Source: Carpediemonas membranifera BICM (taxonomy: Eukaryota; Protista; Fornicata). Taken from it: DNA of 64,000 bases. Both the position numbers and the translations under genes were made by a program. The DNA lies in NCBI GenBank assembly GCA_019828565.1, contig JAHDYR010000015.1:780986-844985 (forward strand). The letters are read 5' to 3'. The stretch's first letter is position 1. Each line of letters starts with the position of its first letter. Below the pieces are notes generated by a model. It searched no databases, had not been told where the DNA came from, and was given only the letters and a program-made list of their open reading frames with translations. This document shows, piece by piece, positions 1 through 40,777 of this stretch.

Positions 1-228
1 GTCCCCGTCTAAGCTTGGTAAATGACTGAGTGATGCGTTGTGGGTGACCCACGCGGTTTACCTCGGGAGCACCGCGCCCCTTGCCGGGCCGGAGGATGCA
101 TTCGCCCGCCTCTGGCGCGCGTGGGGCAGGCTGGCGAGCACGCGATGCGATGGCGGGCCAGATCAATTTCTGTGACACTGTAGAATGCGAGCTCGCGATG
201 ACACGACAAGTCTACAGCTCACACAACA

Positions 229-973
229 ATGAAGTTCGGCACAACTCTCGTAGTCCTTGGCCTGATCGCCACCGTGTTCGCCCAATGCGTCATCACGGAG
301 GAGGAGGCCCTCATGAACATGTACGTTGCCCTCGGCGGCGATTCCTGGACCGACAACACCAACTGGAACACTGGTGACGTCTGCACCTGGTATGGCATCG
401 GCTGCAACATCGACGGCTACGTCGTCAGCATCGACCTCTCCAACAACAACCTCGTCGGCCTCCTCACCGACGACATCGGGTGCTTCCCCTACCTCAAGAG
501 CCTCCAGCTCAACGACAACGAGATCTCCGGCCCCGTCCCCGACGCCATCGGCAACCTGCCCAGCCTCAAGTACCTCAACCTTGACAACAACCTCCTGACT
601 GGCCCCCTGCCCGCCACCCTCTGCGCTGACGAGCACCTCCAGTACATCTACCTCGGCCACAACCTCTTCGAGGGCGATATCCCCGCCTGCTACGTCACCA
701 GCTTCACCTTCGTCAAGGGAGGTCCACCTCGACTGCAACCTGCTCACCGGCGACCTCCTCGACTTCTCCGTCTACGAGTACATGTTCGAGCTCCGCTCCC
801 GCTGCAACAACTTCAACGTCGAGTGCCCCGCCTGGACCGAGACCACTGACATGCTCGTCATCTGCTCCGGCTCCTGCGAGGACTGCCCCATTGTCCCCCC
901 GACCCAGTGCCCCGAGTTCGTCGAGGTCGAGGACTGCGGCCTCTACTACCCCCTTGAGGCTGTCCCCGTCTAA
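229..973 (+). CDS. CWP: CWP-like copy 1 (one +1 G insertion at ~718; probably a consensus error)
   Basis: Near-identical to 6003-6746; aaggGa versus aagga. Confidence 0.7.
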
Positions 974-1189
974 GCTTGGTAAATGACTGAGTGATGCGTT
1001 GTGGGTGACCCACGCGGTTTACCTCGGGAGCACCGCGCCCCTTGCCGGGCCGGAGGATGCATTCGCCCGCCTCTGGCGCGCGTGGGGCAGGCTGGCGAGC
1101 ACGCGATGCGATGGCGGGCCAGATCAATTTCTGTGACACTGTAGAATGCGAGCTCGCGATGACACGACAAGTCTACAGCTCACACAACA

Positions 1190-1935
1190 ATGAAGTTCGG
1201 CACAACTCTCGTAGTCCTTGGCCTGATCGCCACCGTGTTCGCCCAATGCGTCATCACGGAGGAGGAGGCCCTCATGAACATGTACGTTGCCCTCGGCGGC
1301 GATTCCTGGACCGACAACACCAACTGGAACACTGGTGACGTCTGCACCTGGTATGGCATCGGCTGCAACATCGACGGCTACGTCGTCAGCATCGACCTCT
1401 CCAACAACAACCTCGTCGGCCTCCTCACCGACGACATCGGGTGCTTCCCCTACCTCAAGAGCCTCCAGCTCAACGACAACGAGATCTCCGGCCCCGTCCC
1501 CGACGCCATCGGCAACCTGCCCAGCCTCAAGTACCTCAACCTTGACAACAACCTCCTGACTGGCCCCCTGCCCGCCACCCTCTGCGCTGACGAGCACCTC
1601 CAGTACATCTACCTCGGCCACAACCTCTTCGAGGGCGATATCCCCGCCTGCTACGTCACCAGCTTCACCTTCGTCAAGGGAGGTCCACCTCGACTGCAAC
1701 CTGCTCACCGGCGACCTCCTCGACTTCTCTGTCTACGAGTACATGTTCGAGCTCCGCTCCCGCTGCAACAGCTTCAACGTCGAGTGCCCCGCCTGGACCG
1801 AGACCACTGACATGCTCGTCATCTGCTCCGGCTCCTGCGAGGACTGCCCCATTGTCCCCCCCGACCCAGTGCCCCGAGTTCGTCGAGGTCGAGGACTGCG
1901 GCCTCTACTACCCCCTTGAGGCTGTCCCCGTCTAA
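1190..1935 (+). CDS. CWP: CWP-like copy 2 (two +1 homopolymer insertions)
   Basis: Near-identical to 6003-6746; extra G at ~1679 and extra C at ~1860. Confidence 0.7.
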
Positions 1936-2152
1936 GCTTGGTAAAATGACTGAGTGATGCGTTGTGGGTGACCCACGCGGTTTACCTCGGGAGCACCGCG
2001 CCCCTTGCCGGGCCGGAGGATGCATTCGCCCGCCTCTGGCGCGCGTGGGGCAGGCTGGCGAGCACGCGATGCGATGGCGGGCCAGATCAATTTCTGTGAC
2101 ACTGTAGAATGCGAGCTCGCGATGACACGACAAGTCTACAGCTCACACAACA

Positions 2153-2897
2153 ATGAAGTTCGGCACAACTCTCGTAGTCCTTGGCCTGATCGCCACCGTG
2201 TTCGCCCAATGCGTCATCACGGAGGAGGAGGCCCTCATGAACATGTACGTTGCCCCTCGGCGGCGATTCCTGGACCGACAACACCAACTGGAACACTGGT
2301 GACGTCTGCACCTGGTATGGCATCGGCTGCAACATCGACGGCTACGTCGTCAGCATCGACCTCTCCAACAACAACCTCGTCGGCCTCCTCACCGACGACA
2401 TCGGGTGCTTCCCCTACCTCAAGAGCCTCCAGCTCAACGACAACGAGATCTCCGGCCCCGTCCCCGACGCCATCGGCAACCTGCCCAGCCTCAAGTACCT
2501 CAACCTTGACAACAACCTCCTGACTGGCCCCCTGCCCGCCACCCTCTGCGCTGACGAGCACCTCCAGTACATCTACCTCGGCCACAACCTCTTCGAGGGC
2601 GATATCCCCGCCTGCTACGTCACCAACTTCACCTTCGTCAAGGAGGTCCACCTCGACTGCAACCTGCTCACCGGCGACCTCCTCGACTTCTCCGTCTACG
2701 AGTACATGTTCGAGCTCCGCTCCCGCTGCAACAACTTCAACGTCGAGTGCCCCGCCTGGACCGAGACCACTGACATGCTCGTCATCTGCTCCGGCTCCTG
2801 CGAGGACTGCCCCATTGTCCCCCCGACCCAGTGCCCCGAGTTCGTCGAGGTCGAGGACTGCGGCCTCTACTACCCCCTTGAGGCTGTCCCCGTCTAA
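2153..2897 (+). CDS. CWP: CWP-like copy 3 (one +1 C insertion at ~2254)
   Basis: Near-identical to 6003-6746. Confidence 0.7.
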
Positions 2898-3114
2898 GCT
2901 TGGTAAATGACTGAGTGATGCGTTGTGGGTGACCCACGCGGTTTACCTCGGGAGCACCGCGCCCCTTGCCGGGCCGGAGGATGCATTCGCCCGCCTCTGG
3001 CGCGCGTGGGGGCAGGCTGGCGAGCACGCGATGCGATGGCGGGCCAGATCAATTTCTGTGACACTGTAGAATGCGAGCTCGCGATGACACGACAAGTCTA
3101 CAGCTCACACAACA

Positions 3115-3860
3115 ATGAAGTTCGGCACAACTCTCGTAGTCCTTGGCCTGATCGCCACCGTGTTCGCCCAATGCGTCATCACGGAGGAGGAGGCCCTCAT
3201 GAACATGTACGTTGCCCTCGGCGGCGATTCCTGGACCGACAACACCAACTGGAACACTGGTGACGTCTGCACCTGGTATGGCATCGGCTGCAACATCGAC
3301 GGCTACGTCGTCAGCATCGACCTCTCCAACAACAACCTCGTCGGCCTCCTCACCGACGACATCGGGTGCTTCCCCTACCTCAAGAGCCTCCAGCTCAACG
3401 ACAACGAGATCTCCGGCCCCGTCCCCGACGCCATCGGCAACCTGCCAAGCCTCAAGTACCTCAACCTTGACAACAACCTCCTGACTGGCCCCCCTGCCCG
3501 CCACCCTCTGCGCTGACGAGCACCTCCAGTACATCTACCTCGGCCACAACCTCTTCGAGGGCGATATCCCCGCCTGCTACGTCACCAGCTTCACCTTCGT
3601 CAAGGAGGTCCACCTCGACTGCAACCTGCTCACCGGCGACCTCCTCGACTTCTCTGTCTACGAGTACATGTTCGAGCTCCGCTCCCGCTGCAACAGCTTC
3701 AACGTCGAGTGCCCCGCCTGGACCGAGACCACTGACATGCTCGTCATCTGCTCCGGCTCCTGCGAGGACTGCCCCATTGTCCCCCCGACCCAGTGCCCCG
3801 AGTTCGTCGAGGTCGAGGACTGCGGCCTCTACTACCCCCCTTGAGGCTGTCCCCGTCTAA
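3115..3860 (+). CDS. CWP: CWP-like copy 4 (two +1 C insertions)
   Basis: Near-identical to 6003-6746; extra C at ~3492 and ~3838. Confidence 0.7.
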
Positions 3861-4077
3861 GCTTGGTAAATGACTGAGTGATGCGTTGTGGGTGACCCAC
3901 GCGGTTTACCTCGGGAGCACCGCGCCCCTTGCCGGGCCGGAGGATGCATTCGCCCGCCTCTGGCGCGCGTGGGGCAGGCTGGCGAGCACGCGATGCGATG
4001 GCGGGCCAGATCAAAAGTCTGTGACACTGTAGAATGCGAGCTCGCGATGACACGACAAGTCTACAGCTCACACAACA

Positions 4078-4823
4078 ATGAAGTTCGGCACAACTCTCGT
4101 AGTCCTTGGCCTGATCGCCACCGTGTTCGCCCAATGCGTCATCACGGAGGAGGAGGCCCTCATGAACATGTACGTTGCCCTCGGCGGCGATTCCTGGACC
4201 GACAACACCAACTGGAACACTGGTGACGTCTGCACCTGGTATGGCATCGGCTGCAACATCGACGGCTACGTCGTCAGCATCGACCTCTCCAACAACAACC
4301 TCGTCGGCTTCCTCACCGACGACATCGGGTGCTTCCCCTACCTCAAGAGCCTCCAGCTCAACGACAACGAGATCTCCGGCCCCGTCCCCGACGCCATCGG
4401 CAACCTGCCCAGCCTCAAGTACCTCAACCTTGACAACAACCTCCTGACTGGCCCCCTGCCCGCCACCCTCTGCGCTGACGAGCACCTCCAGTACATCTAC
4501 CTCGGCCACAACCTCTTCGAGGGCGATATCCCCCGCCTGCTACGTCACCAACTTCACCTTCGTCAAGGAGGTCCACCTCGACTGCAACCTGCTCACCGGC
4601 GACCTCCCTCGACTTCTCCGTCTACGAGTACATGTTCGAGCTCCGCTCCCGCTGCAACAACTTCAACGTCGAGTGCCCCGCCTGGACCGAGACCACTGAC
4701 ATGCTCGTCATCTGCTCTGGCTCCTGCGAGGACTGCCCCATTGTCCCCCCGACCCAGTGCCCCGAGTTCGTCGAGGTCGAGGACTGCGGCCTCTACTACC
4801 CCCTTGAGGCTGTCCCCGTCTAA
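4078..4823 (+). CDS. CWP: CWP-like copy 5 (two +1 C insertions)
   Basis: Near-identical to 6003-6746; extra C at ~4532 and ~4607. Confidence 0.7.
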
Positions 4824-5040
4824 GCTTGGTAAAATGACTGAGTGATGCGTTGTGGGTGACCCACGCGGTTTACCTCGGGAGCACCGCGCCCCTTGCCGGG
4901 CCGGAGGATGCATTCGCCCGCCTCTGGCGCGCGTGGGGCAGGCTGGCGAGTACGCGATGCGATGGCGGGCCAGATCAATTTCTGTGACACTGTAGAATGC
5001 GAGCTCGCGATGACACGACAAGTCTACAGCTCACACAACA

Positions 5041-5785
5041 ATGAAGTTCGGCACAACTCTCGTAGTCCTTGGCCTGATCGCCACCGTGTTCGCCCAATGC
5101 GTCATCACGGAGGAGGAGGCCCTCATGAACATGTACGTTGCCCTCGGCGGCGATTCCTGGACCGACAACACCAACTGGAACACTGGTGACGTCTGCACCT
5201 GGTATGGCATCGGCTGCAACATCGACGGCTACGTCGTCAGCATCGACCTCTCCAACAACAACCTCGTCGGCCTCCTCACCGACGACATCGGGTGCTTCCC
5301 CTACCTCAAGAGCCTCCAGCTCAACGACAACGAGATCTCCGGCCCCGTCCCCGACGCCATCGGCAACCTGCCCAGCCTCAAGTACCTCAACCTTGACAAC
5401 AACCTCCTGACTGGCCCCCCTGCCCGCCACCCTCTGCGCTGACGAGCACCTCCAGTACATCTACCTCGGCCACAACCTCTTCGAGGGCGATATCCCCGCC
5501 TGCTACGTCACCAGCTTCACCTTCGTCAAGGAGGTCCACCTCGACTGCAACCTGCTCACCGGCGACCTCCTCGACTTCTCTGTCTACGAGTACATGTTCG
5601 AGCTCCGCTCCCGCTGCAACAACTTCAACGTCGAGTGCCCCGCCTGGACCGAGACCACTGACATGCTCGTCATCTGCTCCGGCTCCTGCGAGGACTGCCC
5701 CATTGTCCCCCCGACCCAGTGCCCCGAGTTCGTCGAGGTCGAGGACTGCGGCCTCTACTACCCCCTTGAGGCTGTCCCCGTCTAA
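5041..5785 (+). CDS. CWP: CWP-like copy 6 (one +1 C insertion at ~5418)
   Basis: Near-identical to 6003-6746. Confidence 0.7.
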
Positions 5786-5951
5786 GCTTGGTAAATGACT
5801 GAGTGATGCGTTGTGGGTGACCCACGCGGTTTACCTCGGGAGCACCGCGCCCCTTGCCGGGCCGGAGGATGCATTCGCCCGCCTCTGGCGCGCGTGGGGC
5901 AGGCTGGCGAGCACGCGATGCGATGGCGGGCCAGATCAAAAGTCTGTGACA

Positions 5952-5991
5952 CTGTAGAATGCGAGCTCGCGATGACACGACAAGTCTACAG
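5952..5991. promoter_or_regulatory. Pair of inverted CTACAG motifs (Giardia Myb2-type encystation element) upstream of the CWP-like ATG; present in every unit (e.g. 178-183 and 212-217)
   Basis: CTGTAG at -51..-46 and CTACAG at -17..-12 from the ATG. C(T/A)ACAG is the recalled Myb2 site in Giardia cwp promoters. Confidence 0.55.
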
Positions 5992-6002
5992 CTCACACAA
6001 CA

Positions 6003-6746
6003 ATGAAGTTCGGCACAACTCTCGTAGTCCTTGGCCTGATCGCCACCGTGTTCGCCCAATGCGTCATCACGGAGGAGGAGGCCCTCATGAACATGTACGT
6101 TGCCCTCGGCGGCGATTCCTGGACCGACAACACCAACTGGAACACTGGTGACGTCTGCACCTGGTATGGCATCGGCTGCAACATCGACGGCTACGTCGTC
6201 AGCATCGACCTCTCCAACAACAACCTCGTCGGCCTCCTCACCGACGACATCGGGTGCTTCCCCTACCTCAAGAGCCTCCAGCTCAACGACAACGAGATCT
6301 CCGGCCCCGTCCCCGACGCCATCGGCAACCTGCCCAGCCTCAAGTACCTCAACCTTGACAACAACCTCCTGACTGGCCCCCTGCCCGCCACCCTCTGCGC
6401 TGACGAGCACCTCCAGTACATCTACCTCGGCCACAACCTCTTCGAGGGCGATATCCCCGCCTGCTACGTCACCAGCTTCACCTTCGTCAAGGAGGTCCAC
6501 CTCGACTGCAACCTGCTCACCGGCGACCTCCTCGACTTCTCTGTCTACGAGTACATGTTCGAGCTCCGCTCCCGCTGCAACAACTTCAACGTCGAGTGCC
6601 CCGCCTGGACCGAGACCACTGACATGCTCGTCATCTGCTCCGGCTCCTGCGAGGACTGCCCCATTGTCCCCCCGACCCAGTGCCCCGAGTTCGTCGAGGT
6701 CGAGGACTGCGGCCTCTACTACCCCCTTGAGGCTGTCCCCGTCTAA
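6003..6746 (+). CDS. CWP: Cyst wall protein (Giardia CWP1/2/3-like): signal peptide, LRRs, Cys-rich C-terminal domain, 247 aa; the only copy without a frameshift
   Basis: Signal peptide MKFGTTLVVLGLIATVFA; cap ..NWNTGDVCTWYGIGC; LRRs IDLSNNNLVG / IGCFPYLKSLQLNDNEISGPVP / KEVHLDCNLLTGD; tail CEDCPIVPPTQCP..DCGLYY. These match the recalled Giardia CWP motifs (IGCLTYLKTLYL, KELHLDCNQLTG, C..C..LPPTNCP...GCTYY) and length (~240-250 aa). Confidence 0.85.
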   Translation: MKFGTTLVVLGLIATVFAQCVITEEEALMNMYVALGGDSWTDNTNWNTGDVCTWYGIGCNIDGYVVSIDLSNNNLVGLLTDDIGCFPYLKSLQLNDNEISGPVPDAIGNLPSLKYLNLDNNLLTGPLPATLCADEHLQYIYLGHNLFEGDIPACYVTSFTFVKEVHLDCNLLTGDLLDFSVYEYMFELRSRCNNFNVECPAWTETTDMLVICSGSCEDCPIVPPTQCPEFVEVEDCGLYYPLEAVPV

Positions 6747-6963
6747 GCTTGGTAAATGACTGAGTGATGCGTTGTGGGTGACCCACGCGGTTTACCTCGG
6801 GAGCACCGCGCCCCCTTGCCGGGCCGGAGGATGCATTCGCCCGCCTCTGGCGCGCGTGGGGCAGGCTGGCGAGCACGCGATGCGATGGCGGGCCAGATCA
6901 ATTTCTGTGACACTGTAGAATGCGAGCTCGCGATGACACGACAAGTCTACAGCTCACACAACA

Positions 6964-7710
6964 ATGAAGTTCGGCACAACTCTCGTAGTCCTTGGCCTGA
7001 TCGCCACCGTGTTCGCCCAATGCGTCATCACGGAGGAGGAGGCCCTCATGAACATGTACGTTGCCCTCGGCGGCGATTCCTGGACCGACAACACCAACTG
7101 GAACACTGGTGACGTCTGCACCTGGTATGGCATCGGCTGCAACATCGACGGCTACGTCGTCAGCATCGACCTCTCCAACAACAACCTCGTCGGCCTCCTC
7201 ACCGACGACATCGGGTGCTTCCCCTACCTCAAGAGCCTCCAGCTCAACGACAACGAGATCTCCGGCCCCGTCCCCGACGCCATCGGCAACCTGCCCAGCC
7301 TCAAGTACCTCAACCTTGACAACAACCTCCTGACTGGCCCCCTGCCCGCCACCCTCTGCGCTGACGAGCACCTCCAGTACATCTACCTCGGCCACAACCT
7401 CTTCGAGGGCGATATCCCCGCCTGCTACGTCACCAGCTTCACCTTCGTCAAGGAGGTCCACCTCGACTGCAACCTGCTCACCGGCGACCTCCCTCGACTT
7501 CTCTGTCTACGAGTACATGTTCGAGCTCCGCTCCCGCTGCAACAACTTCAACGTCGAGTGCCCCGCCTGGACCGAGACCACTGACATGCTCGTCATCTGC
7601 TCCGGCTCCTGCGAGGACTGCCCCATTGTCCCCCCGACCCAGTGCCCCCGAGTTCGTCGAGGTCGAGGACTGCGGCCTCTACTACCCCCCTTGAGGCTGT
7701 CCCCGTCTAA
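6964..7710 (+). CDS. CWP: CWP-like copy 8 (three +1 C insertions in the 3' third)
   Basis: Near-identical to 6003-6746. Confidence 0.7.
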
Positions 7711-7926
7711 GCTTGGTAAATGACTGAGTGATGCGTTGTGGGTGACCCACGCGGTTTACCTCGGGAGCACCGCGCCCCTTGCCGGGCCGGAGGATGCATT
7801 CGCCCGCCTCTGGCACGCGTGGGGCAGGCTGGCGAGCACGCGATGCGATGGCGGGCCAGATCAATTTCTGTGACACTGTAGAATGCGAGCTCGCGATGAC
7901 ACGACAAGTCTACAGCTCACACAACA

Positions 7927-8691
7927 ATGAAGTTCGGCACAACTCTCGTAGTCCTTGGCCTGATCGCCACCGTGTTCGCCCAATGCGTCATCACGGAGGA
8001 GGAGGCCCTCATGAACATGTACGTTGCCCTCGGCGGCGATTCCTGGACCGACAACACCAACTGGAACACTGGTGACGTCTGCACCTGGTATGGCATCGGC
8101 TGCAACATCGACGGCTACGTCGTCAGCATCGACCTCTCCAACAACAACCTCGTCGGCCTCCCTCACCGACGACATCGGGTGCTTCCCCTACCCTCAAGAG
8201 CCTCCAGCTCAACGACAACGAGATCTCCGGCCCCGTCCCCGACGCCATCGGCAACCTGCCCAGCCTCAAGTACCTCAACCTCGACAACAACCTCCTGACT
8301 GGCCCCCTGCCCGCCACCCTCTGCGCTGACGAGCACCTCCAGTACATCTACCTCGGCCACAACCTCTTCGAGGGCGATATCCCCGCCTGCTACGTCACCA
8401 GCTTCACCTTCGTCAAGGAGGTCCACCTCGACTGCAACCTGCTCACCGGCGACCTCCTCGACTTCTCTGTCTACGAGTACATGTTCGAGCTCCGCTCCCG
8501 CTGCAACAGCTTCAACGTCGAGTGCCCCGCCTGGACCGAGACCACTGACATGCTCGTCATCTGCTCCGGCTCCTGCGAGGACTGCCCCATTGTCCCCCCC
8601 GACCCAGTGCCCCGAGTTCGTCGAGGTCGAGGACTGCGGCCTCTACTACCCCCTTGAGGCTGTCCCCGCTCCAAGCTTGGTAAATGACTGA
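7927..8691 (+). CDS. CWP: CWP-like copy 9 (three +1 C insertions; variant 3' end giving ...VPAPSLVND)
   Basis: Near-identical to 6003-6746; ccc gct cca agc replaces ccc gtc taa. Confidence 0.65.
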
Positions 8692-8891
8692 GTGATGCGT
8701 TGTGGGTGACCCACGCGGTTTACCTCGGGAGCACCGCGCCCCTTGCCGGGCCGGAGGATGCATTCGCCCGCCTCTGGCGCGCGTGGGGCAGGCTGGCGAG
8801 CACGCGATGCGATGGCGGGCCAGATCAAAAGTCTGTGACACTGTAGAATGCGAGCTCGCGATGACACGACAAGTCTACAGCTCACACAACA

Positions 8892-9655
8892 ATGAAGTTC
8901 GGCACAACTCTCGTAGTCCTTGGCCTGATCGCCACCGTGTTCGCCCAATGCGTCATCACGGAGGAGGAGGCCCTCATGAACATGTACGTTGCCCTCGGCG
9001 GCGATTCCTGGACCGACAACACCAACTGGAACACTGGTGACGTCTGCACCTGGTATGGCATCGGCTGCAACATCGACGGCTACGTCGTCAGCATCGACCT
9101 CTCCAACAACAACCTCGTCGGCCTCCCTCACCGACGACATCGGGTGCTTCCCCTACCTCAAGAGCCTCCAGCTCAACGACAACGAGATCTCCGGCCCCGT
9201 CCCCGACGCCATCGGCAACCTGCCCAGCCTCAAGTACCTCAACCTTGACAACAACCTCCTGACTGGCCCCCCTGCCCGCCACCCTCTGCGCTGACGAGCA
9301 CCTCCAGTACATCTACCTCGGCCACAACCTCTTCGAGGGCGATATCCCCGCCTGCTACGTCACCAACTTCACCTTCGTCAAGGAGGTCCACCTCGACTGC
9401 AACCTGCTCACCGGCGACCTCCTCGACTTCTCTGTCTACGAGTACATGTTCGAGCTCCGCTCCCGCTGCAACAACTTCAACGTCGAGTGCCCCGCCTGGA
9501 CCGAGACCACTGACATGCTCGTCATCTGCTCCGGCTCCTGCGAGGACTGCCCCATTGTCCCCCCGACCCAGTGCCCCGAGTTCGTCGAGGTCGAGGACTG
9601 CGGCCTCTACTACCCCCTTGAGGCTGTCCCCGCTCCAAGCTTGGTAAATGACTGA
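8892..9655 (+). CDS. CWP: CWP-like copy 10 (two +1 C insertions; variant 3' end giving ...VPAPSLVND)
   Basis: Near-identical to 6003-6746; same stop-loss variant as copy 9. Confidence 0.65.
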
Positions 9656-9854
9656 GTGATGCGTTGTGGGTGACCCACGCGGTTTACCTCGGGAGCACCG
9701 CGCCCCTTGCCGGGCCGGAGGATGCATTCGCCCGCCTCTGGCGCGCGTGGGGCAGGCTGGCGAGCACGCGATGCGATGGCGGGCCAGATCAAAGTCTGTG
9801 ACACTGTAGAATGCGAGCTCGCGATGACACGACAAGTCTACAGCTCACACAACA

Positions 9855-10600
9855 ATGAAGTTCGGCACAACTCTCGTAGTCCTTGGCCTGATCGCCACCG
9901 TGTTCGCCCAATGCGTCATCACGGAGGAGGAGGCCCTCATGAACATGTACGTTGCCCTCGGCGGCGATTCCTGGACCGACAACACCAACTGGAACACTGG
10001 TGACGTCTGCACCTGGTATGGCATCGGCTGCAACATCGACAGCTACGTCGTCAGCATCGACCTCTCCAACAACAACCTCGTCGGCCTCCTCACCGACGAC
10101 ATCGGGTGCTTCCCCTACCTCAAGAGCCTCCAGCTCAACGACAACGAGATCTCCGGCCCCGTCCCCGACGCCATCGGCAACCTGCCCAGCCTCAAGTACC
10201 TCAACCTTGACAACAACCTCCTGACTGGCCCCCCTGCCCGCCACCCTCTGCGCTGACGAGCACCTCCAGTACATCTACCTCGGCCACAACCTCTTCGAGG
10301 GCGATATCCCCGCCTGCTACGTCACCAGCTTCACCTTCGTCAAGGAGGTCCACCTCGACTGCAACCTGCTCACCGGCGACCTCCCTCGACTTCTCCGTCT
10401 ACGAGTACATGTTCGAGCTCCGCTCCCGCTGCAACAACTTCAACGTCGAGTGCCCCGCCTGGACCGAGACCACTGACATGCTCGTCATCTGCTCCGGCTC
10501 CTGCGAGGACTGCCCCATTGTCCCCCCGACCCAGTGCCCCGAGTTCGTCGAGGTCGAGGACTGCGGCCTCTACTACCCCCTTGAGGCTGTCCCCGTCTAA
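9855..10600 (+). CDS. CWP: CWP-like copy 11 (two +1 C insertions)
   Basis: Near-identical to 6003-6746. Confidence 0.7.
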
Positions 10601-10816
10601 GCTTGGTAAATGACTGAGTGATGCGTTGTGGGTGACCCACGCGGTTTACCTCGGGAGCACCGCGCCCCTTGCCGGGCCGGAGGATGCATTCGCCCGCCTC
10701 TGGCGCGCGTGGGGCAGGCTGGCGAGCACGCGATGCGATGGCGGGCCAGATCAATTTCTGTGACACTGTAGAATGCGAGCTCGCGATGACACGACAAGTC
10801 TACAGCTCACACAACA

Positions 10817-11561
10817 ATGAAGTTCGGCACAACTCTCGTAGTCCTTGGCCTGATCGCCACCGTGTTCGCCCAATGCGTCATCACGGAGGAGGAGGCCCTC
10901 ATGAACATGTACGTTGCCCTCGGCGGCGATTCCTGGACCGACAACACCAACTGGAACACTGGTGACGTCTGCACCTGGTATGGCATCGGCTGCAACATCG
11001 ACGGCTACGTCGTCAGCATCGACCTCTCCAACAACAACCTCGTCGGCCTCCTCACCGACGACATCGGGTGCTTCCCCTACCTCAAGAGCCTCCAGCTCAA
11101 CGACAACGAGATCTCCGGCCCCGTCCCCGACGCCATCGGCAACCTGCCCAGCCTCAAGTACCTCAACCTTGACAACAACCTCCTGACTGGCCCCCCTGCC
11201 CGCCACCCTCTGCGCTGACGAGCACCTCCAGTACATCTACCTCGGCCACAACCTCTTCGAGGGCGATATCCCCGCCTGCTACGTCACCAACTTCACCTTC
11301 GTCAAGGAGGTCCACCTCGACTGCAACCTGCTCACCGGCGACCTCCTCGACTTCTCTGTCTACGAGTACATGTTCGAGCTCCGCTCCCGCTGCAACAGCT
11401 TCAACGTCGAGTGCCCCGCCTGGACCGAGACCACTGACATGCTCGTCATCTGCTCCGGCTCCTGCGAGGACTGCCCCATTGTCCCCCCGACCCAGTGCCC
11501 CGAGTTCGTCGAGGTCGAGGACTGCGGCCTCTACTACCCCCTTGAGGCTGTCCCCGTCTAA
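10817..11561 (+). CDS. CWP: CWP-like copy 12 (one +1 C insertion at ~11193)
   Basis: Near-identical to 6003-6746. Confidence 0.7.
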
Positions 11562-11775
11562 GCTTGGTAAATGACTGAGTGATGCGTTGTGGGTGACCCA
11601 CGCGGTTTACCTCGGGAGCACCGCGCCCCTTGCCGGGCCGGAGGATGCATTCGCCCGCCTCTGGCGCGCGTGGGGCAGGCTGGCGAGCACGCGATGCGAT
11701 GGCGGGCCAGATCAATTTCTGTGACACTGTAGAATGCGAGCTCGCGATTACGACAAGTCTACAGCTCACACAACA

Positions 11776-12520
11776 ATGAAGTTCGGCACAACTCTCGTAG
11801 TCCTTGGCCTGATCGCCACCGTGTTCGCCCAATGCGTCATCACGGAGGAGGAGGCCCTCATGAACATGTACGTTGCCCTCGGCGGCGATTCCTGGACCGA
11901 CAACACCAACTGGAACACTGGTGACGTCTGCACCTGGTATGGCATCGGCTGCAACATCGACGGCTACGTCGTCAGCATCGACCTCTCCAACAACAACCTC
12001 GTCGGCCTCCTCACCGACGACATCGGGTGCTTCCCCTACCTCAAGAGCCTCCAGCTCAACGACAACGAGATCTCCGGCCCCGTCCCCGACGCCATCGGCA
12101 ACCTGCCCAGCCTCAAGTACCTCAACCTCGACAACAACCTCCTGACTGGCCCCCTGCCCGCCACCCTCTGCGCTGACGAGCACCTCCAGTACATCTACCT
12201 CGGCCACAACCTCTTCGAGGGCGATATCCCCGCCTGCTACGTCACCAGCTTCACCTTCGTCAAGGAGGTCCACCTCGACTGCAACCTGCTCACCGGCGAC
12301 CTCCTCGACTTCTCTGTCTACGAGTACATGTTCGAGCTCCGCTCCCGCTGCAACAACTTCAACGTCGAGTGCCCCGCCTGGACCGAGACCACTGACATGC
12401 TCGTCATCTGCTCCGGCTCCTGCGAGGACTGCCCCATTGTCCCCCCGACCCAGTGCCCCGAGTTCGTCGAGGTCGAGGACTGCGGCCTCTACTACCCCCC
12501 TTGAGGCTGTCCCCGTCTAA
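11776..12520 (+). CDS. CWP: CWP-like copy 13 (one +1 C insertion near the end; as written the frame stops at 12504)
   Basis: Open to ...GLYYPP; extra C at ~12498. Confidence 0.75.
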
Positions 12521-12736
12521 GCTTGGTAAATGACTGAGTGATGCGTTGTGGGTGACCCACGCGGTTTACCTCGGGAGCACCGCGCCCCTTGCCGGGCCGG
12601 AGGATGCATTCGCCCGCCTCTGGCGCGCGTGGGGCAGGCTGGCGAGCACGCGATGCGATGGCGGGCCAGATCAATTTCTGTGACACTGTAGAATGCGAGC
12701 TCGCGATGACACGACAAGTCTACAGCTCACACAACA

Positions 12737-13482
12737 ATGAAGTTCGGCACAACTCTCGTAGTCCTTGGCCTGATCGCCACCGTGTTCGCCCAATGCGTCA
12801 TCACGGAGGAGGAGGCCCTCATGAACATGTACGTTGCCCTCGGCGGCGATTCCTGGACCGACAACACCAACTGGAACACTGGTGACGTCTGCACCTGGTA
12901 TGGCATCGGCTGCAACATCGACGGCTACGTCGTCAGCATCGACCTCTCCAACAACAACCTCGTCGGCCTCCCTCACCGACGACATCGGGTGCTTCCCCTA
13001 CCTCAAGAGCCTCCAGCTCAACGACAACGAGATCTCCGGCCCCGTCCCCGACGCCATCGGCAACCTGCCCAGCCTCAAGTACCTCAACCTTGACAACAAC
13101 CTCCTGACTGGCCCCCCTGCCCGCCACCCTCTGCGCTGACGAGCACCTCCAGTACATCTACCTCGGCCACAACCTCTTCGAGGGCGATATCCCCGCCTGC
13201 TACGTCACCAGCTTCACCTTCGTCAAGGAGGTCCACCTCGACTGCAACCTGCTCACCGGCGACCTCCTCGACTTCTCCGTCTACGAGTACATGTTCGAGC
13301 TCCGCTCCCGCTGCAACAACTTCAACGTCGAGTGCCCCGCCTGGACCGAGACCACTGACATGCTCGTCATCTGCTCCGGCTCCTGCGAGGACTGCCCCAT
13401 TGTCCCCCCGACCCAGTGCCCCGAGTTCGTCGAGGTCGAGGACTGCGGCCTCTACTACCCCCTTGAGGCTGTCCCCGTCTAA
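12737..13482 (+). CDS. CWP: CWP-like copy 14 (two +1 C insertions)
   Basis: Near-identical to 6003-6746. Confidence 0.7.
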
Positions 13483-13933
13483 GCTTGGTAAATGACTGAG
13501 TGATGCGTTGTGGGTGACCCACGCGGTTTACCTCGGGAGCACCGCGCCCCTTGCCGGGCCGGAGGATGCATTCACCACAAACAAGATGAGGTGTCCGCGC
13601 ACCTGCACTGGTAAGGTAACTGTTCCCAAAGTCTGCATTGCAAATGTGAAGCTTCACATCATTTCAGATTTCAACTCGGTTCACGACTGAACCTTATTGG
13701 AATCAGCGCGACTGTACTGACGTCATGCCATCCGACAGCATGGACCCTACTGTTGTGGATGGGTGACCGGGACATCCAAGTCGTTGTCCTGAAACCGACT
13801 AAGAAGACAAGGTACGTCAGTGGACTGGACCCAGCGTTTGTGAACGTTACCCACATTGATTCGGAAGTATGCAAAGTGAATTGGAGGCGATCTTCGGCAG
13901 TGAAAGAAAAAAGCTTGTCGCCCACAACCAGAG

Positions 13934-16900
13934 ATGAGAACCTGTATCGTCTTCTCTGGACAGGCGAATCCAACATTCTTCTCCGAACTACGGAAGATTT
14001 ACAATGACAGCCAGCCGTTGACGAAGGAACTTATTGTTCGGGCTGCAGCCGAGCTTCGAAAGCAATGTGATGATTACACACGGCATTTCGGCAAGCAATC
14101 CGAAGAATCGCCCGTATTCAACGTCTATGAGGGCCTCACGCTTGATCTTATCGCTTGGCTTGAGGACCCCTCCTCGATTGGCGGCGAGGCCGCTCCCCTT
14201 CTTTTCGCCGCTCCCAGCCACCCCCTCATCGCGCTATGCCAGCTCGCACACTTCTCCCAGGCTGTAGAGCTGTCTGGTGAGACTTACGAGGAGTTTGTGA
14301 GCCATATCCATGGTAGTACAGGCCATTCACAAGGCATCGTCACTGCCACGTGCGTGTCCGTGTCCCACACCGCAGAGGAGTTTATTACCAACTCCCTCCA
14401 GATGCTGATCTACCTCTTCTGGCAGGGTGTGTTCTCAACCGAGGACTTCCCCCAATACGACTTCTACACTGATACAACCCGCCTGGCAAGAACTCCGATG
14501 GCCACCGTCTTCGGAATCACACGTGAAGTGCTCGACGGCATCTTGCACGATTACAACAACCCTCCCAGCGGACCCCTGGCCCCCGAGGACACCATTGCAC
14601 TCTCCCTGGTCAACGAGAGCCAACGATTCATCGTAACTGGCACCTACACCGCCCTCAGCAAGCTGAAGGAGAGAATTGACCCAATGTTCTCGAACGAGTT
14701 CCAGGACTCCCTCCGTTTCTCCCAGAGAAAGCCTCGCGGTGGTTTCATCTATCTGCCGATCTCTGCGCCGTTCCATGCAGGCAGCACCCACCTCATGACA
14801 GCCACCCACGACCGTCTCATCACCAAGGTCGCTGAACTCGGCATCGACTTCCCCGCAGCCAATGCCCAGTTCCCTATATTCTCGACGACGTGCGGCACGG
14901 ACGTGGCCGAGATCACCCGCCGCCACAACCAGACAAACATGTGGCCCGAGCTCATCCACATGCAGCTCCTGCAACCCGTGTACTGGGACGTTGCCATGAA
15001 GGCCGTCCTTACCCACGACTTTACCCACATTCTCGACTTCGGTCCGGGTCGGTTCATCTGCCGCTGCACGGTGCACTGGGCTGCCGGTCACGGCATCCAC
15101 ATCTGCACCATGGTCCCCGGCGGAGACTCTCGGTCACCCCACATCTCTGTGGGCATTGCCAAGGGCCCCCGGCCCAGGACTTGGCGCAGTTTAGCCCCGA
15201 CTCTGACTGCGGACAACAAGGTGGCCAATCACTGGACGGAAGTGATGAAGAAGCCGCCCGTGATGGTGGGGGCCATGACTCCTACCACCGTGTCAGCCGA
15301 GCTCGTTTCTGCAGTTACCCGTGCCGGCTACCACGTCGAGTTGGCGTGCGGCGGGCTCTCCCGAGAGCACCTCATGACTGGCCGCATCGAAGAGATCCTC
15401 TCCAAGGTCAACCCCGGCGACGGTGTGACCCTCAACATGCTTTATCTCAACCCCAAGCAGTGGGCCATGCAGTTCCCACTCGCACTCGAACTGCTCGACA
15501 GAAGCGTCCCCATCGATGGCGTGACCATCGCTGCTGGTGTCCCGCAGCCAAAGGTCGCCGCTGAGTTCGTCAACCAGCTCGTTGCCAAAGGCGTGTCGCA
15601 CGTTGGGTTCAAGCCCGCGAATGTCAGAGCTATCAGAGACGTCATCGCCGTTGCCACCGCCTGTCCCAAGGCCACCATCATCCTCCAGTTCACCGGCGGT
15701 AGGGCCGGTGGCCACCACAGCGGCGAGCACTGCCACGAACCCCTTCTCGCGACGTATGCAGACATCAGGGTCTGCAGCAACATCCTCCTCGTGGCCGGCG
15801 GAGGCATCAGCACGGGCGCGGACGCCCAGACGTGGCTCACAGGCGCCTGGGCCGAGCCGTACGGCATGCAGGCGATGCCTGTGGACGCCGCACTCATTTC
15901 CTCCCGCGTCATGGTCACCAATGAGGCAGAGACGGCCGAGTGCGTCAAGGACGCCATCGTAGCCACACCCGGCCTCTCCCACGAGGACGCTGACAACTGG
16001 GAAGAGACCTACGCCGACGGGGCCAAGAGCGGCGTGCTAACAGTGGACTCTGAGCTCGGGGCTCCCATCCACGTGGTCAAGAATCGCGGCACCATGCTCT
16101 GGCGTGACCTCGACACCCGTCTGTTCTGTCTCCAGGGCGATGAGTTCCTCGCCAAGCTCGCTGAGATGAAGGAAGAACTCATCGCTCGTCTCAACGAAGA
16201 CTATCAGAAGGTATACTTCGGTGTCCGCGACGGCCTGCCCTGCGACGTCGACGACATGAGTTACAAGGCCGTCTGTGCCCGCATGTTCCAGCTCATGGCC
16301 CCTAATGGCCGCTTCATCCACCCCGATTACGCCGACCGCACCCGCCAGTTCCTCGTCCGCTGCATCGAGAGGTCTCAGGCCCCCGTCCACGGAGGTGAGC
16401 AGGCCCCCGCGGAGATCGTATGCTCTTGGGTCGATGACTTGCTCGAGGCGCCTGAGAAGCTCGACGAGTTCTTCTGTGCGACCCCTGCACTCACTCGTCT
16501 GGGCAACTCTGTGCTCAGAGTGGACGACGTCGACTTCTTCCTCTTCATCTGCCGGACAACCGGAAAGCCAGTCAACTTTATTCCATGCATAGACAAAGAC
16601 TTCAAGGCATACTTCAAGAAGGACTCTCTGTGGTACTCTGAGTGCCCCGAGGCCATCCCAGAGGGCGACGCGGGCAGAGTGTTCATCTTGCTCGGCCCCG
16701 TCTCTGCAGCTGGATGCACAGTCAAGAACGAGCCCGTCGCTGATGTCCTGAACGGCATCATGGCCCACGTCGCCGCCCACACCACTGCTAAGGTCGCCCC
16801 CGTCCCAAAGTGGGCCTCTCTCAAGCGGACGCTGACTGTCGGCTCATCCGACTTTGATGATCTCGTATCTTCGACCATCGGAACCCCGATTCATGCGGTA

Positions 16901-19900
16901 CTCGACTCCAAGTTCATTGCTAGAGGTAGTGAACGCGTCCAGAACCCCATCATGAAGGCTCTCGAGGGTCACGGCATCACTGTTGAGGTCAACCCCACCT
17001 ATCTCGAGGTCGAGCAGGAGGGCAACGTCATCGTCACTGTCGCTATCGAGGACAACGTCGCCAAGGCGTCCCTCCCCTACAGCATTCCCGGCAAGGCTGA
17101 CCGCGTCTCCCTCGACCTTGTCCTTAACCTGCACCCTGATCGCCCACACGCCGTCCTCTCTCAGTGCCCCAAGGAGTGGATTTCCAGCGTCCACCGCTTC
17201 TACTCTGCCCTATGGAATCTCGACCGGGTCCGTGCCACTACGGCGCCCCTACCCAAGCGGGTTTTCAGTGACACGTTTAATGTGACAGATGCCTCGGCCA
17301 AGCTCTTCACTGCAGCAGTCCAGCGGTTGTCTTCGCCCTCTGCCCCCATGGACTATCTCATCGTCGGCTGCTGGAACTCCCTCCTCAAGGGCCTCGTCGC
17401 CCCCGAGCTCAGGCTGAACCTCTTCCGCCTCGTGCACTTGTCCAATGACTTCAACTTCATCGGCAAGCCCCAGCTCATCACGGCTGGTATGAAACTCTTC
17501 TCTGAGATGATGGTGACAGAGGTCACCCGCCGATCCAAGGGCCTCATCATCCGTATCACGGGTACGGTCGCCCGTCACGGCCAGACTCCCTTCGCCGAGA
17601 TCGAGTCCGCCTTCTTCATCCGCGGTGACTACAGCGGAGTGACAGAATTCAACACCCGCCCCGCCATTGCGGTGATGAAGGCCGAGGAGAGCGTACCCCT
17701 CCAAACCGGCTCGTACACGGTCACATCCCCCTGTGGCATGGCGCTCAGGGCCCCTGTGGAGAACGCCCAGTACTCGGCAGCATCCCGTGACTACAACCCC
17801 ATCCACACGAACTCGCTCTTTGCCTCAATCGCTGGTCTACCCGGCTGCATCGTCCACGGCATGTGGTCCTCTGCCGCTGTCCGGGCAACTCTCGAGGCCT
17901 GCTGCTGCGGTGACCTCGCTGTGAGGCCCCTTGACTCATCGCCCAAGCCTCGGGACGCCCCAGGCAGAGTTGCGTACTACCACGCTGAGTTCACGGACAT
18001 GGTCCGCAACCAGGACAACCTGGTGATCGCCATGAAGCACGTCGGCCAGCACAACGGCGCCGCCGTCATCGACATCACCGCCACGGTCGAGCAGACTGGT
18101 GCCGTCGCCCTCAAGGCCACAGCTCACGTCCTGCCGCCCGACACTGCCTTCGTCTTCACTGGCCAAGGCAGCGCCAAGCCCGGCATGGGCATGGACCTCT
18201 ATGCTACGAGCGAAGAGGCCCGCAACGTCTGGGACGAGGCTGACCGGTACCTGTTCGAGACGTACGGTATCAGCCTGCTCCGTATTGTGCGTGAGAACCC
18301 CAAGGAGCTCACCGTGCACTTTGGTGGGCAGAGAGGCGCCGCCATCCGCAAGAACTACATGAAGCTGACCTCAGTCAAGATGGTGTTCACCGACGGGAAG
18401 TGGGCTGAGCACGAAACGCCCCTCTTCCCCGAGATCACCCCAAGATCCCGCGTGTTCACGTACAGGGCGCCCAAGGGCCTGCTTTATGCTACCCAGTTCA
18501 CCCAGCCGGCCATCATCACATACTGCAAGGCCGCTGCCACTGATCTGATGGCCCGCCAGCTTATTGCCAAGCCGCAGTACTTTACAGGCCACTCTCTGGG
18601 TGAGTACTCGGCTCTTGCCATCATCGGGGACATCTTCTACAACGACAGGCTGTCCGAGCTCGTGTTCTTGAGAGGTATGATGATGCAACGCTGCTTCCCT
18701 CGTGATGAGAGCGGCAGGTCTGCCTATACGATGGTCGCGGTCGACCCGAAGAGGGCTGGCAACGGGCTCACTGCTGAGGGCATCGAGCAAGTCTGCGATC
18801 TGATTGAAAAGGAGGCCCACACTGAGCAGTATCTCCTACAGGTCGTCAACCTCAACATCGTGAAGCGCCAGCTCGTCCTCGCCGGCCATCTCAAATGTCT
18901 AGAGACCTTCACCCAGTACATCAACTCTGCCGCCGACCTCACGACTGAAGGTATCACGGCTCACGGCCCTGGAGCCATCAAGACCATCTTCGCGGGCATC
19001 CACGACACTGTCGAGCTGTCCCGGACCAAGTGCACGGTCCCCCTGGTCGGCATCGACGTCCCCTTCCACTCCCGCCTGCTCTCTGGCGGCGTCGCCTCGT
19101 TCCGTCCGTTCCTGTGCTCCCACGTCCGCGAGGACCTCGATGTCACTGACTTTGTCGGCAGATACATCCCCAACCTCACGGGCACACCCTTCAGCCTCGA
19201 CAAGGCGTTCTTTGAGAAGGTATACTCTGTCACGTCCTCGCCAGTCATTGCCGCGATCCTCGCTGACTGGGAGGAGAAGTCGAAGGATGTCAAGAAGATC
19301 GGACGCGATCTTCTGATTGAGCTGCTGACGTATCAGTTCGCATCCCCCGTCCAATGGATCCGCACCCAATCACAGATTTTCCAGACTGCCGGAAAGACTA
19401 CAGTCAACCCACCCTGCAAGAGAATGATTGAAGTCGGCCCCACTTCGACTCTGACCACCATGGCCGCCCGGACCTTCGTAGAGCTCGGGATGCCTGCCAA
19501 CACGGCTGAGCTGCTCACGCTCGCCACTAAGGCCGCGCCTATCGTCCACGACTACGACGACCCGGATGACGTCGAGGATGAGCCCGAGCCCGCCGCCCAG
19601 CCGACCGCCACTGCTGCGGCTCCGGCCCCCGTCCAGATGCAGATGCAGGCCGCACCGGCGCCCACCTCGCTGGTCGACGCCCCACTGGCCCCCGAGTATG
19701 TGATGCGGTGTTACCTGGCCAAGAAGCTGAACAAGCCTCTCTGTGACATCGCCCCCACTGCGTCGATCAAGGACCTCGTTGGTGGCAAGAGCGCTCTCCA
19801 GAACGAGATTGTTGGTGAGCTTGACGTGGAGTTCAAGTCTACTCCCGACGGCATCGCTGAGCAGCCTATCGCCACTGTCGCATCTGCTATTAAGGGCTAC

Positions 19901-40295: not shown

Positions 40296-40777
40296 GTGCT
40301 TATCTAAGTCTGTGTGAGCGGTGTTGTGGGGAACGCACGTTGTCCGCTGTTCTGCCATCCGGGATCGATGTGATGACTGCACGAAATCGATCTGAAGATT
40401 GATCTGATGATTGATCTGATGCCATCGCTACCAGATGTCGTCGCGGCGCTCCGGTGAGTAGACCTGAGATGTGTTCAGGTTGCTCATCTCCAAGCCAGCC
40501 ACACCATTTCCAAGATCAACCAGGGCGAGTGTCACAGCCTCGTAAGCAGCCGCCCCATGTGCCAAAGCTGCACGCCATTGAAGGTATGATAGTGTAAGAC
40601 ATAGCGCACAGACATGCAATGGCTCCCCTATGCCTCCCACTCCACCATTGTGACCCCAACCAGCAGGGCGGGACTTGAGAGCAAACAGCACACGTGGCCG
40701 ACCGCCGACACTATACCGTGCCACTACCCGCACATGTATCCTATGTATATAGTAAATACCGCTTTATGACCCAGCCC

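Follow-up and report, generated by a model that had tools for sequence, protein, structure and literature searches.

The first 13,573 nucleotides of the window (the whole 64,000-nucleotide stretch of Carpediemonas membranifera DNA analysed here) belong to array A, a tandem array of genes for a predicted Giardia-type cyst wall protein (CWP). Its units are near-identical, arranged head-to-tail and about 961 bp long, and each begins with one shared ATG. There are 14 in the window, with 959-965 bp between unit starts, in agreement with the original prediction of at least 14 copies:

1-228, forward strand: tail of a 15th unit of array A, ahead of the 14 units
229, 1190, 2153, 3115, 4078, 5041 and 6003, forward strand: ATGs of units 1-7
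6964, 7927, 8892, 9855, 10817, 11776 and 12737, forward strand: ATGs of units 8-14

The repeat ends at 13573, inside a spacer, as had been proposed. The proposed start at position 1 was not correct: array A begins 6.2 kb upstream, and the window part (1..13573, forward strand) is its 3' two thirds. The full span (C16:774807-794561) holds 20 units with an ATG and one unit cut at its 5' end, about 21 in all. The consensus of the units is a 247-aa ORF, the same as that at 6003-6746, and its stop-to-ATG spacer is 216 bp, close to the roughly 218 bp first given. The 5' end of the array is cut by an LTR element and a retrotransposon nest adjoins, while a type I fatty acid synthase (FAS) gene starts 360 bp past the end of the repeat. 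The array itself was described correctly from the outset; its frameshifts, a second array, the paralogues and expression were missing from that account.

The second array, B, lies elsewhere in the genome and has about 10 units, with 85% protein identity to array A. Three single CWP paralogues are located outside both arrays, giving about 34 CWP genes, of which about 31 type 1 copies sit in arrays A and B. The depositors' names for these proteins are 'Cyst wall protein type 1A/1B/2/3/4', that of 6003-6746 carrying the family name 'Cyst wall protein, type 1A'. Divergence within the arrays is 0.4% (the mean substitution difference among array A copies) and 0.13%, against 10% between the coding sequences of A and B, and the spacers of A and B differ much more than the coding sequences. 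The copies are homogenised within each array and diverged between arrays, a likeness within arrays that polishing may exaggerate; two arrays, ~31 copies and low internal divergence support the predicted dosage amplification with homogenisation. Histone, rDNA and trypanosomatid tubulin repeats also run head-to-tail, with copies alike inside an array and different from one array to another, whereas the Carpediemonas gene encodes a structural protein, putatively secreted, and every unit has a promoter of its own. In the same genome the 13 tubulin genes are dispersed and the histone and actin arrays have only 3-4 copies. Both arrays (about 21 and 10 copies) may have arisen, and may each stay homogeneous, through unequal crossover. 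SNP mosaics were considered as proof of gene conversion and dropped as unsafe, because short-read polishing of a repeat would give the same pattern; variants 13-70 bp apart were unlinked, and unclustered along the array. No paper on the CWP arrays of C. membranifera was found in the literature.

As assembled, the full ORF is present in one of the 14 window copies (6003-6746) and in 3 of the 20 full-length units of array A, so the predicted 247-aa gene stands for the consensus and not for every copy. The frames of array A are broken by 29 single-base insertions and one deletion, with no nonsense substitutions. Identical insertions reappear in non-adjacent copies, unlinked to nearby variants, and 27 of the 29 inserted bases adjoin an identical base. 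The last unit (12737..13573) has assembled +C frameshifts at 12970 and 13112; the RNA contigs spanning these positions have neither, and are in frame at both sites. One RNA contig has an 8-nt loose end at 12971. The assembly was made from R9.4 nanopore reads, and its short-read polishing consisted mostly of homopolymer corrections; the multi-copy actin gene of the same genome is also split by an apparent frame change. Since nearly all the breaks are +1 homopolymer insertions and the RNA is in frame at both sites, most of them are probably polishing errors, and most of the deposited 'type 1A' proteins are probably truncated through them.

If the frameshifts were real, the array would be a decaying by-product of a recombination-prone genome near a retrotransposon nest, with few working copies. 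This would agree with the 17 of 20 full-length A units that are out of frame as assembled, with the LTR element cutting the array and with a dN/dS of 0.83 between A and B; RNA contigs also drop minority variants, so frameshifted transcripts could go unseen. We nevertheless give decay little probability. The pattern and recurrence of the insertions, the sequencing method and the actin gene all speak against it; codon bias, which is extreme in the array gene (GC3 92%), constrains the synonymous sites that enter dN/dS; and a second organism seems to have kept the tandem unit. A sediment contig of 937 nt resembles a relative's array collapsed to a single unit. Expansion by the assembler from one or two real copies would agree with the scrambled look of copy-level variants, but it is very improbable given a long-read assembly in which unique sequence flanks the array on either side, two separate arrays, copy-specific ends in array B (including an in-frame 6-nt deletion) that are not products of homopolymer errors, and a unit-length contig in an independent metagenome. 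The exact copy number in the assembly may be off.

The protein is best described from the copy that is intact in the window:

6003..6746, forward strand: intact copy, 247-aa ORF identical to the array consensus
6003..6059, forward strand: predicted signal peptide (hydrophobic residues 1-19, VFAQ before Cys20), read from sequence
6072..6527, forward strand: leucine-rich repeat (LRR) N-cap and LRRs, with a plant-type cap at residues 24-60 and 4-5 LRR units at about residues 65-175
6528..6743, forward strand: acidic Cys-rich tail, with 7 of the 14 Cys and a terminal DCGLYYP motif

The hydrophobic 19-residue N-terminus ending in AQ-C is present in all close homologues, and the structure model has a helix at residues 6-14 with low pLDDT. 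The LRR region, a putative glycan-binding domain, has Pfam matches to LRRNT_2, LRR_1, LRR_4 and LRR_8. It is modelled as the cap and five strand-turn units up to residue 175 (pLDDT about 90 over residues 21-130), and pLDDT is below 50 in the tail from residue 183 on. All five type 1/2 proteins have 14 Cys, and 12 Cys are invariant in an alignment of seven homologues from outside Giardia, while generic LRR matches of 200-300 aa (n=16) have 2-8. Type 1 proteins have no transmembrane tail or membrane anchor; type 2 carries a weakly basic C-terminal extension of about 30 aa.

The defining features of Giardia CWPs are a signal peptide, 4-5 LRRs and >14 conserved Cys (PMC2867935). Like CWP1-3 of Giardia intestinalis, the array protein is about 240-250 aa long and has 4-5 LRRs and about 14 Cys, with a Cys-rich C-terminus and a predicted signal peptide, and in both organisms one paralogue has a C-terminal extension (type 2 in Carpediemonas). 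In contrast, Giardia has three CWP genes, whereas Carpediemonas has about 34, with 31 placed in its two tandem arrays. Plant-type and bacterial LRR proteins (FLS2 and SERK ectodomains, Bacteroidota) share the N-cap, the repeat fold and 35-42% identity over about residues 16-176, but their similarity leaves the Cys-rich tail unmatched, and the Carpediemonas protein has no kinase or membrane segment.

No CWP of Giardia or Spironucleus came up in homologue searches or in a HMMER scan of representatives, in which giant multi-LRR proteins crowded the results. The LRR fold was all that PDB, Atlas feature and Atlas fold searches recovered, and a metagenome scan gave only generic LRR matches at 32-43% identity. 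Five primer-derived anchors (Giardia and Spironucleus CWP peptides) were scored by shuffling and against 116 generic LRR controls. The Spironucleus peptide DCGVYVRQ (PMC3916229) matches the C-terminus at the last Cys (shuffle p 0.012); in homologue P0005 (GCA_047518385.1) this anchor has p below 0.002, and it matches 0 of 116 controls. The Giardia LRR-border anchor also matches (p 0.016), but so do 6 of 116 controls, and the other three anchors were not significant. Because no diplomonad sequence was returned, orthology rests on architecture, short anchors and the depositors' names. The identification as a Giardia-type CWP is supported by architecture, the 14 Cys, the C-terminal motif shared with Spironucleus and those names, though the BLASTp-type search suggested for it gave no diplomonad CWP.

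The spacers contain conserved motifs, given here for one unit and, for the 5' end, the last unit:

6747..6963, forward strand: spacer, the short 3' end of one gene and the promoter of the next; RNA contigs absent there in the unit tested
6913..6918, reverse strand: CTACAG (-51 to -46), fitting the Giardia Myb2 consensus C(T/A)ACAG
6934..6940, forward strand: TGACACG (-30 to -24), an instance of TGACAYG
6947..6952, forward strand: CTACAG (-17 to -12), conserved in arrays A and B as well as the two foreign homologues
12731..12736, forward strand: likely 5' UTR of about 6 nt; a library adapter is joined at 12731 in one cDNA contig

CTACAG and TGACAYG occur in every array spacer. Upstream of CWP genes of three organisms, TGACAYG is found in 7 of 7 cases, against 3 of 64 other genes, and C(T/A)ACAG in 4 of 7, against 7 of 64 (p 0.009), being absent from types 2-4; the motif p-values are inflated because the motifs were chosen after inspecting CWP genes. 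Genome-wide, combined matches are the two arrays and unrelated dispersed repeats. Giardia CWP1-3 likewise have C(T/A)ACAG in the promoter and a very short 5' UTR. A spliced leader was rejected as the source of one loose 5' end of 23 nt: the genome lacks this sequence, and five unrelated papers on RNA sequencing print it.

RNA contigs in frame show that arrays A and B are both transcribed in culture, the RNA coming from two libraries; the signal is one of bulk culture. Contig depth, a poor measure of expression, is 350-1136 for the arrays and 26.8 for the neighbouring FAS transcript, and per gene copy the arrays are near the FAS level (721/21 and 527/10 vs 26.8). The genome paper describes its RNA as log-phase (PMC8516963), which applies if the RNA run is that one. 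One identical 170-nt contig at depth 2.6 in run X8, from another organism, was taken as cross-contamination.

The genome was also searched for the deaminase, UAP-family and epimerase enzymes of the UDP-GalNAc pathway of the cyst polysaccharide. Glucosamine-6-phosphate deaminase (GNPDA) is present above the NCBIfam cut-off, alongside three genes of the UAP family and four that resemble UDP-sugar 4-epimerases, two of them GalE. These enzyme families also serve ordinary glycosylation. Their promoters do not share TGACAYG with the CWP genes, and a promoter module common to the sugar pathway genes was not found as such; reverse CTACAG precedes two epimerase-like genes and one UAP gene only.

We think it rather probable that the array raises the dosage of a wall lectin, like CWP1 a major CWP, for an unreported cyst stage. 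Each 961-bp unit would be transcribed as a self-contained gene from a short promoter, and its CWP1-like product would be secreted by way of the ER. On the model of Giardia CWP1, whose LRR domain binds the beta-1,3-GalNAc polymer (PMC2924369), the LRR domain would bind a GalNAc-type glycan and the Cys-rich tail would cross-link proteins by disulfides into a wall. Many copies would allow a fast burst of wall protein at encystation, putatively controlled by the Myb-type site CTACAG and the second element TGACAYG, with a two-repeat Myb at C65:155103 as a candidate factor. Related free-living fornicates, Hicanonectes and Iotanema, do encyst (PMC7985675, PMC11603281). They are, however, the only ones among these flagellates for which the reviews consulted list cysts, and for C. 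frisia 'No cysts are observed' (PMC5437931). Growing Giardia cells keep their CWP genes silent (PMC5171811), whereas Carpediemonas transcripts look abundant in culture RNA; these might come from a minority of encysting cells, or from leaky expression.

The same transcripts, near FAS level per copy in two libraries, the genus without listed cysts and the sugar pathway promoters, most of which have no CWP motifs, would also agree with a constitutive surface coat on the swimming cell, or a matrix secreted by it, directed against oxygen, sulfide, predators or bacteria, the array giving a steady high dosage. Cyst-only use in Giardia would then be derived, or Carpediemonas would have re-used a cyst protein. 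We consider this unlikely: type 1 proteins have no anchor, CTACAG, an encystation site in Giardia, is kept in three organisms, and a few percent of strongly induced encysting cells would give an equal bulk signal, spontaneously encysting cells being found in Giardia cultures (PMC5171811).

The wall might also be that of a zygote, formed when haploid flagellates fuse and a TALE homeodomain protein activates the CWP genes through TGACAYG. TALE factors control the zygote walls of Chlamydomonas. A TALE-like homeodomain gene is present at C8:501575 (E 1e-11) and all seven CWP promoters have the motif; C. membranifera is predicted to be haploid, with Hap2 and Gex1 (PMC8516963), and a TALE protein of Entamoeba encystation binds TGACAG (PMC11633172). 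Yet TGACAYG differs from TGACAG and is a candidate site by its letters, TGAC is bound by other factor families too, and sex has not been seen in C. membranifera, which makes a zygote wall quite improbable. It would be a special case of a cyst. That the protein is either made constantly as coat or matrix or used in a zygote wall under a TALE switch, the cyst-only, Myb2-controlled use of the protein in Giardia being a later narrowing, is doubtful.

The surprise of an amplified CWP family in a species without a known cyst had been overstated, since Spironucleus already exemplifies it. The accessible text of PMC3916229 reports eight highly similar and three divergent CWP genes in Spironucleus salmonicida, a common upstream motif in the CWP1-like genes, cysts not seen in culture, a Spironucleus CWP entering Giardia cyst walls and the inference of a hidden cyst. 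Its class 1 CWPs are likewise an expanded near-identical family with a C-terminal DCGxY motif. Carpediemonas differs in lifestyle, copy number and arrangement: Spironucleus is parasitic, and Carpediemonas has about four times the copies, placed head-to-tail, whereas that text describes no tandem CWP arrays. The Spironucleus CWP was followed into walls; the Carpediemonas protein is known from genes and transcripts. A cyst wall shared across fornicates has been proposed before (PMC7985675, PMC7762791).

Giardia depends on its cyst wall for passage between hosts. C. membranifera is free-living, as predicted, and early-branching among fornicates, and it transcribes a CWP-type protein that is about tenfold amplified and has a promoter element conserved in Giardia. 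This supports a wall, and part of its control, that predate parasitism; a cyst stage so far overlooked, or a cell coat put to a second use, would be older than parasitism in Giardia's lineage. The cell cycle of C. membranifera is already odd: neither ORC nor Cdc6 was found. One abundant transcript, one antibody and a 217-bp promoter would make a cheap marker for a resting stage.

The window opens inside a head-to-tail repeat of 14 units with identical ATG context, whose starts run from 229 to 12737 at a period of 959-965 bp. The tandem array of at least 14 head-to-tail cyst wall protein (CWP) units originally predicted is thus borne out, and positions 1-228 match exactly the end of one further unit. 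The consensus unit of this array (array A) has 960 bp, a 744-bp gene plus a 216-bp spacer, and its protein is identical to the product of 6003-6746. The expectation of 14 near-identical gene copies holds for the repeat units, but only 6003-6746 has a full reading frame as assembled. As assembled, the adjacent copies 7927 and 8892 have in common an insertion and a stop codon altered from T to C (8660-8670 and 9625-9635), which may be a real variant or a polishing error. The repeat stops at 13573, within a spacer and 360 bp upstream of this gene:

Window 13934-25018, + strand: type I fatty acid synthase, intact, 3694 aa, single-chain fungal/bacterial-type, with a C-terminal phosphopantetheinyl transferase

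A single-chain synthase is unexpected for a fornicate; to our knowledge, diplomonads have no de novo fatty acid synthesis.

CWP loci in the C. membranifera assembly (69 contigs, 24,237,836 bases; C, contig) and the element nest bordering array A

C16:774807-794561: array A, 20 ATG units plus one cut at position 317
C16:766000-774806: gypsy-like LTR retrotransposon nest, one element with a chromodomain, cutting the first array A unit at position 317
C18:146534-156114: array B, 10 genes plus a 3' fragment at a period of about 948 bp
C65:535025: type 2 CWP, single gene, 276 aa, C-terminal extension
C65:118569: type 3 CWP, single gene
C54:1074596: type 4 CWP, single gene

The array B protein is 85% identical to that of array A (coding DNA 90%), while the spacer has diverged far more. 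Type 1 CWP genes, with about 31 copies, outnumber the tubulins (7 + 6, dispersed) and the histone and actin clusters (3-4 copies). One cluster of three actin genes (C6:866360-890559) has a member broken by an apparent frameshift, and an HSP70 frame in the window (38748-40382, - strand, 545 aa) extends no further than position 482 of the 599-position profile, from position 1, and may be a frameshifted multi-copy gene too. Another tandem repeat, with a 597-bp period, begins at C65:539213 (L036:8214-10000), 3.5 kb downstream of the type 2 gene; its copies are 100% identical across the portion examined. The nest interrupting the 5' end of array A encodes protease, RT, RNase H, integrase and chromodomain. 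Its junction with CWP sequence is found again at C30:34518-43209, where another element (103-bp terminal repeats, 5-bp duplication) interrupts a CWP fragment of 337 bp that ends at tRNA genes (tRNA-Phe, tRNA-Val). The 5' portion lost from the cut unit was sought elsewhere and not found.

The family itself is already known. GenBank lists members of the array A protein's cluster on the same contig under the name 'Cyst wall protein, type 1A [Carpediemonas membranifera]', with types 1B, 2, 3 and 4 for the paralogues, so the depositors had recognised the family. Spironucleus salmonicida has an expanded near-identical CWP family (eight plus three genes) with a shared motif, encystment not having been seen, and an ancestral fornicate cyst wall was proposed earlier. 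In the available part of the genome paper, the word 'cyst' is absent from the main text and occurs once in the supplements, inside an enzyme name (PMC8516963). No description of the arrays was found in the mainly open-access literature searched. New, as far as found, are a pair of homogenised tandem arrays with about 31 copies in all, the fact that they are transcribed in culture, conserved promoter elements and the likely presence of a conserved tandem unit in one more organism.

An assembly artefact is a very improbable source of the arrays, given unique flanks in a long-read assembly, two separate arrays, copy-specific ends in array B and an independent 937-nt sediment metagenome contig (SRR31444220; L042:1-937). 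The protein encoded by this contig is 79% identical to that of array A. The contig terminates at the stop codon and its start matches the post-stop sequence of both arrays (score equalled in 0/2000 shuffles for B and 4/2000 for A), which gives it the appearance of a collapsed tandem unit. To judge from this sequence, the tandem arrangement is therefore probably common to a second, uncultured Carpediemonas-like organism. A third homologue (GCA_047518385.1; L041:479-1210), 52% identical, is a lone gene on a 2-kb contig.

Both arrays are clearly transcribed. Of the sequencing-run contig sets compared, X1 and X2 hold identical data and are RNA-like: no contigs cover the spacer or intergenic DNA, and the 11,125-nt contig of the synthase equals the ORF plus 40 nt. 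A-specific and B-specific contigs were both found, in frame. Over the same interval, contig depth was 721 for A, 527 for B and 26.8 for the synthase; contig depth is a poor expression measure, so we read the transcripts only as present and probably abundant. In the smaller library X3, CWP was assembled and the synthase was not. GC at third codon positions, 92% against 60-81% in ten neighbours, suggests high expression. One contig has the library adapter joined at 12731, implying a 5' UTR of about 6 nt. Giardia CWP genes are silenced during growth (PMC5171811), whereas the Carpediemonas arrays are transcribed in culture; a constitutive coat is possible, although unlikely.

The array A coding regions contain 29 single-base insertions and one deletion. 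Same-base runs, mostly of C, are lengthened by 27 of the 29, and no nonsense substitutions were found in these regions; the neighbouring 11-kb synthase gene is unbroken. The assembly derives from short-read-polished R9.4 nanopore reads (homopolymers, 12,098 of the first 16,804 corrections), and short-read polishing fails within near-identical repeats. The same insertions turn up in copies that are not neighbours, and they show no linkage to variants 13-70 bp distant. Wherever RNA contigs of the last unit cross its insertions 12970 and 13112, the inserted bases are missing, which falls short of proof because contigs drop minority alleles; two X3 contigs terminate at 12971 with 8 loose letters. 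The frameshifts are probably mostly not real, and we consider a decaying array improbable. The SNP mosaic was rejected as evidence of gene conversion because its variants show the same unlinked pattern over 13-70 bp. Part of the inter-copy variation is real, such as the copy-specific ends of array B, among them an end that has lost 6 nt in frame and another that is A-like.

The type 1A protein starts with 19 hydrophobic N-terminal residues; a plant-type LRR cap and 4-5 LRRs follow, and the tail is acidic. It contains 14 cysteines, a number shared by types 1B and 2 and by the two foreign homologues, 12 being invariant across seven family members; generic LRR matches of similar length have 2-8. 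Giardia CWPs are described with a signal peptide plus four to five LRRs and >14 conserved cysteines (PMC2867935). Since homologue searches returned no diplomonad CWP sequences, peptides encoded by published cloning primers were used as stand-in anchors. Two anchors gave matches: the Spironucleus CWP C-terminus DCGVYVRQ (PMC3916229) to DCGLYYPL, at the last cysteine (shuffle p 0.012; 0/116 generic LRR controls), and the LRR border peptide of Giardia CWP1 (PMC2924369) to residues 161-171 (p 0.016; 6/116 controls). The remaining three anchors gave no significant match. Residues 135-247 as sole query retrieved Carpediemonas-type proteins only. The outcome named beforehand as refuting, best hits to generic LRR proteins with no similarity across the Cys-rich tail, was therefore not observed, and the Giardia-type identity stands as a proposal, but the similarity to diplomonad CWPs obtained here extends over two short anchors.

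On balance, we favour as the most likely reading that a hitherto unreported cyst stage draws on the arrays for a burst of secreted wall lectin. The many copies would allow such a burst; by analogy with Giardia CWP1 (PMC2924369), the LRR domain may bind a GalNAc-type glycan and the Cys-rich tail may cross-link through disulfides. Hicanonectes and Iotanema are the only free-living relatives listed with cysts (PMC7985675, PMC11603281); the description of C. frisia has none (PMC5437931). A zygote wall seems a rather remote alternative.

Every array A spacer has CTACAG at -17 and a reverse copy at -51; the Giardia Myb2 consensus is C(T/A)ACAG. CTACAG is kept in array B and both foreign homologues, the one in GCA_047518385.1 having several TACAG sites and a doubled TGACA motif upstream. 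CTACAG occurs in 4/7 CWP genes versus 7/64 others (p 0.009) and TGACAYG, within 40 nt of the ATG, in 7/7 from three organisms versus 3/64, statistics that are generous because the motifs were chosen after inspection and the sediment gene is related to the genes of arrays A and B, as these are to each other. Conservation amid diverged spacers is better evidence. Two genes are candidates for the promoter motifs:

C65:155103-155405: candidate two-repeat Myb gene, 532-codon frame
C8:501575-501694: candidate TALE-like homeodomain gene

Several similar non-TALE homeobox genes are also present. In Entamoeba, an encystation TALE protein binds TGACAG (PMC11633172). GNPDA, UAP and UDP-sugar 4-epimerase genes are present in the genome; TGACAYG is absent from their promoters, and reverse CTACAG occurs in three sugar-pathway gene promoters. 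Two bacterial-like 306-aa epimerase genes (C7:182970 and C26:623976) share short conserved upstream blocks, including CTGTAGAA, which is present in the array A spacer too. A gene of the UAP family (C26:629512) is located 5 kb away from the C26 copy.
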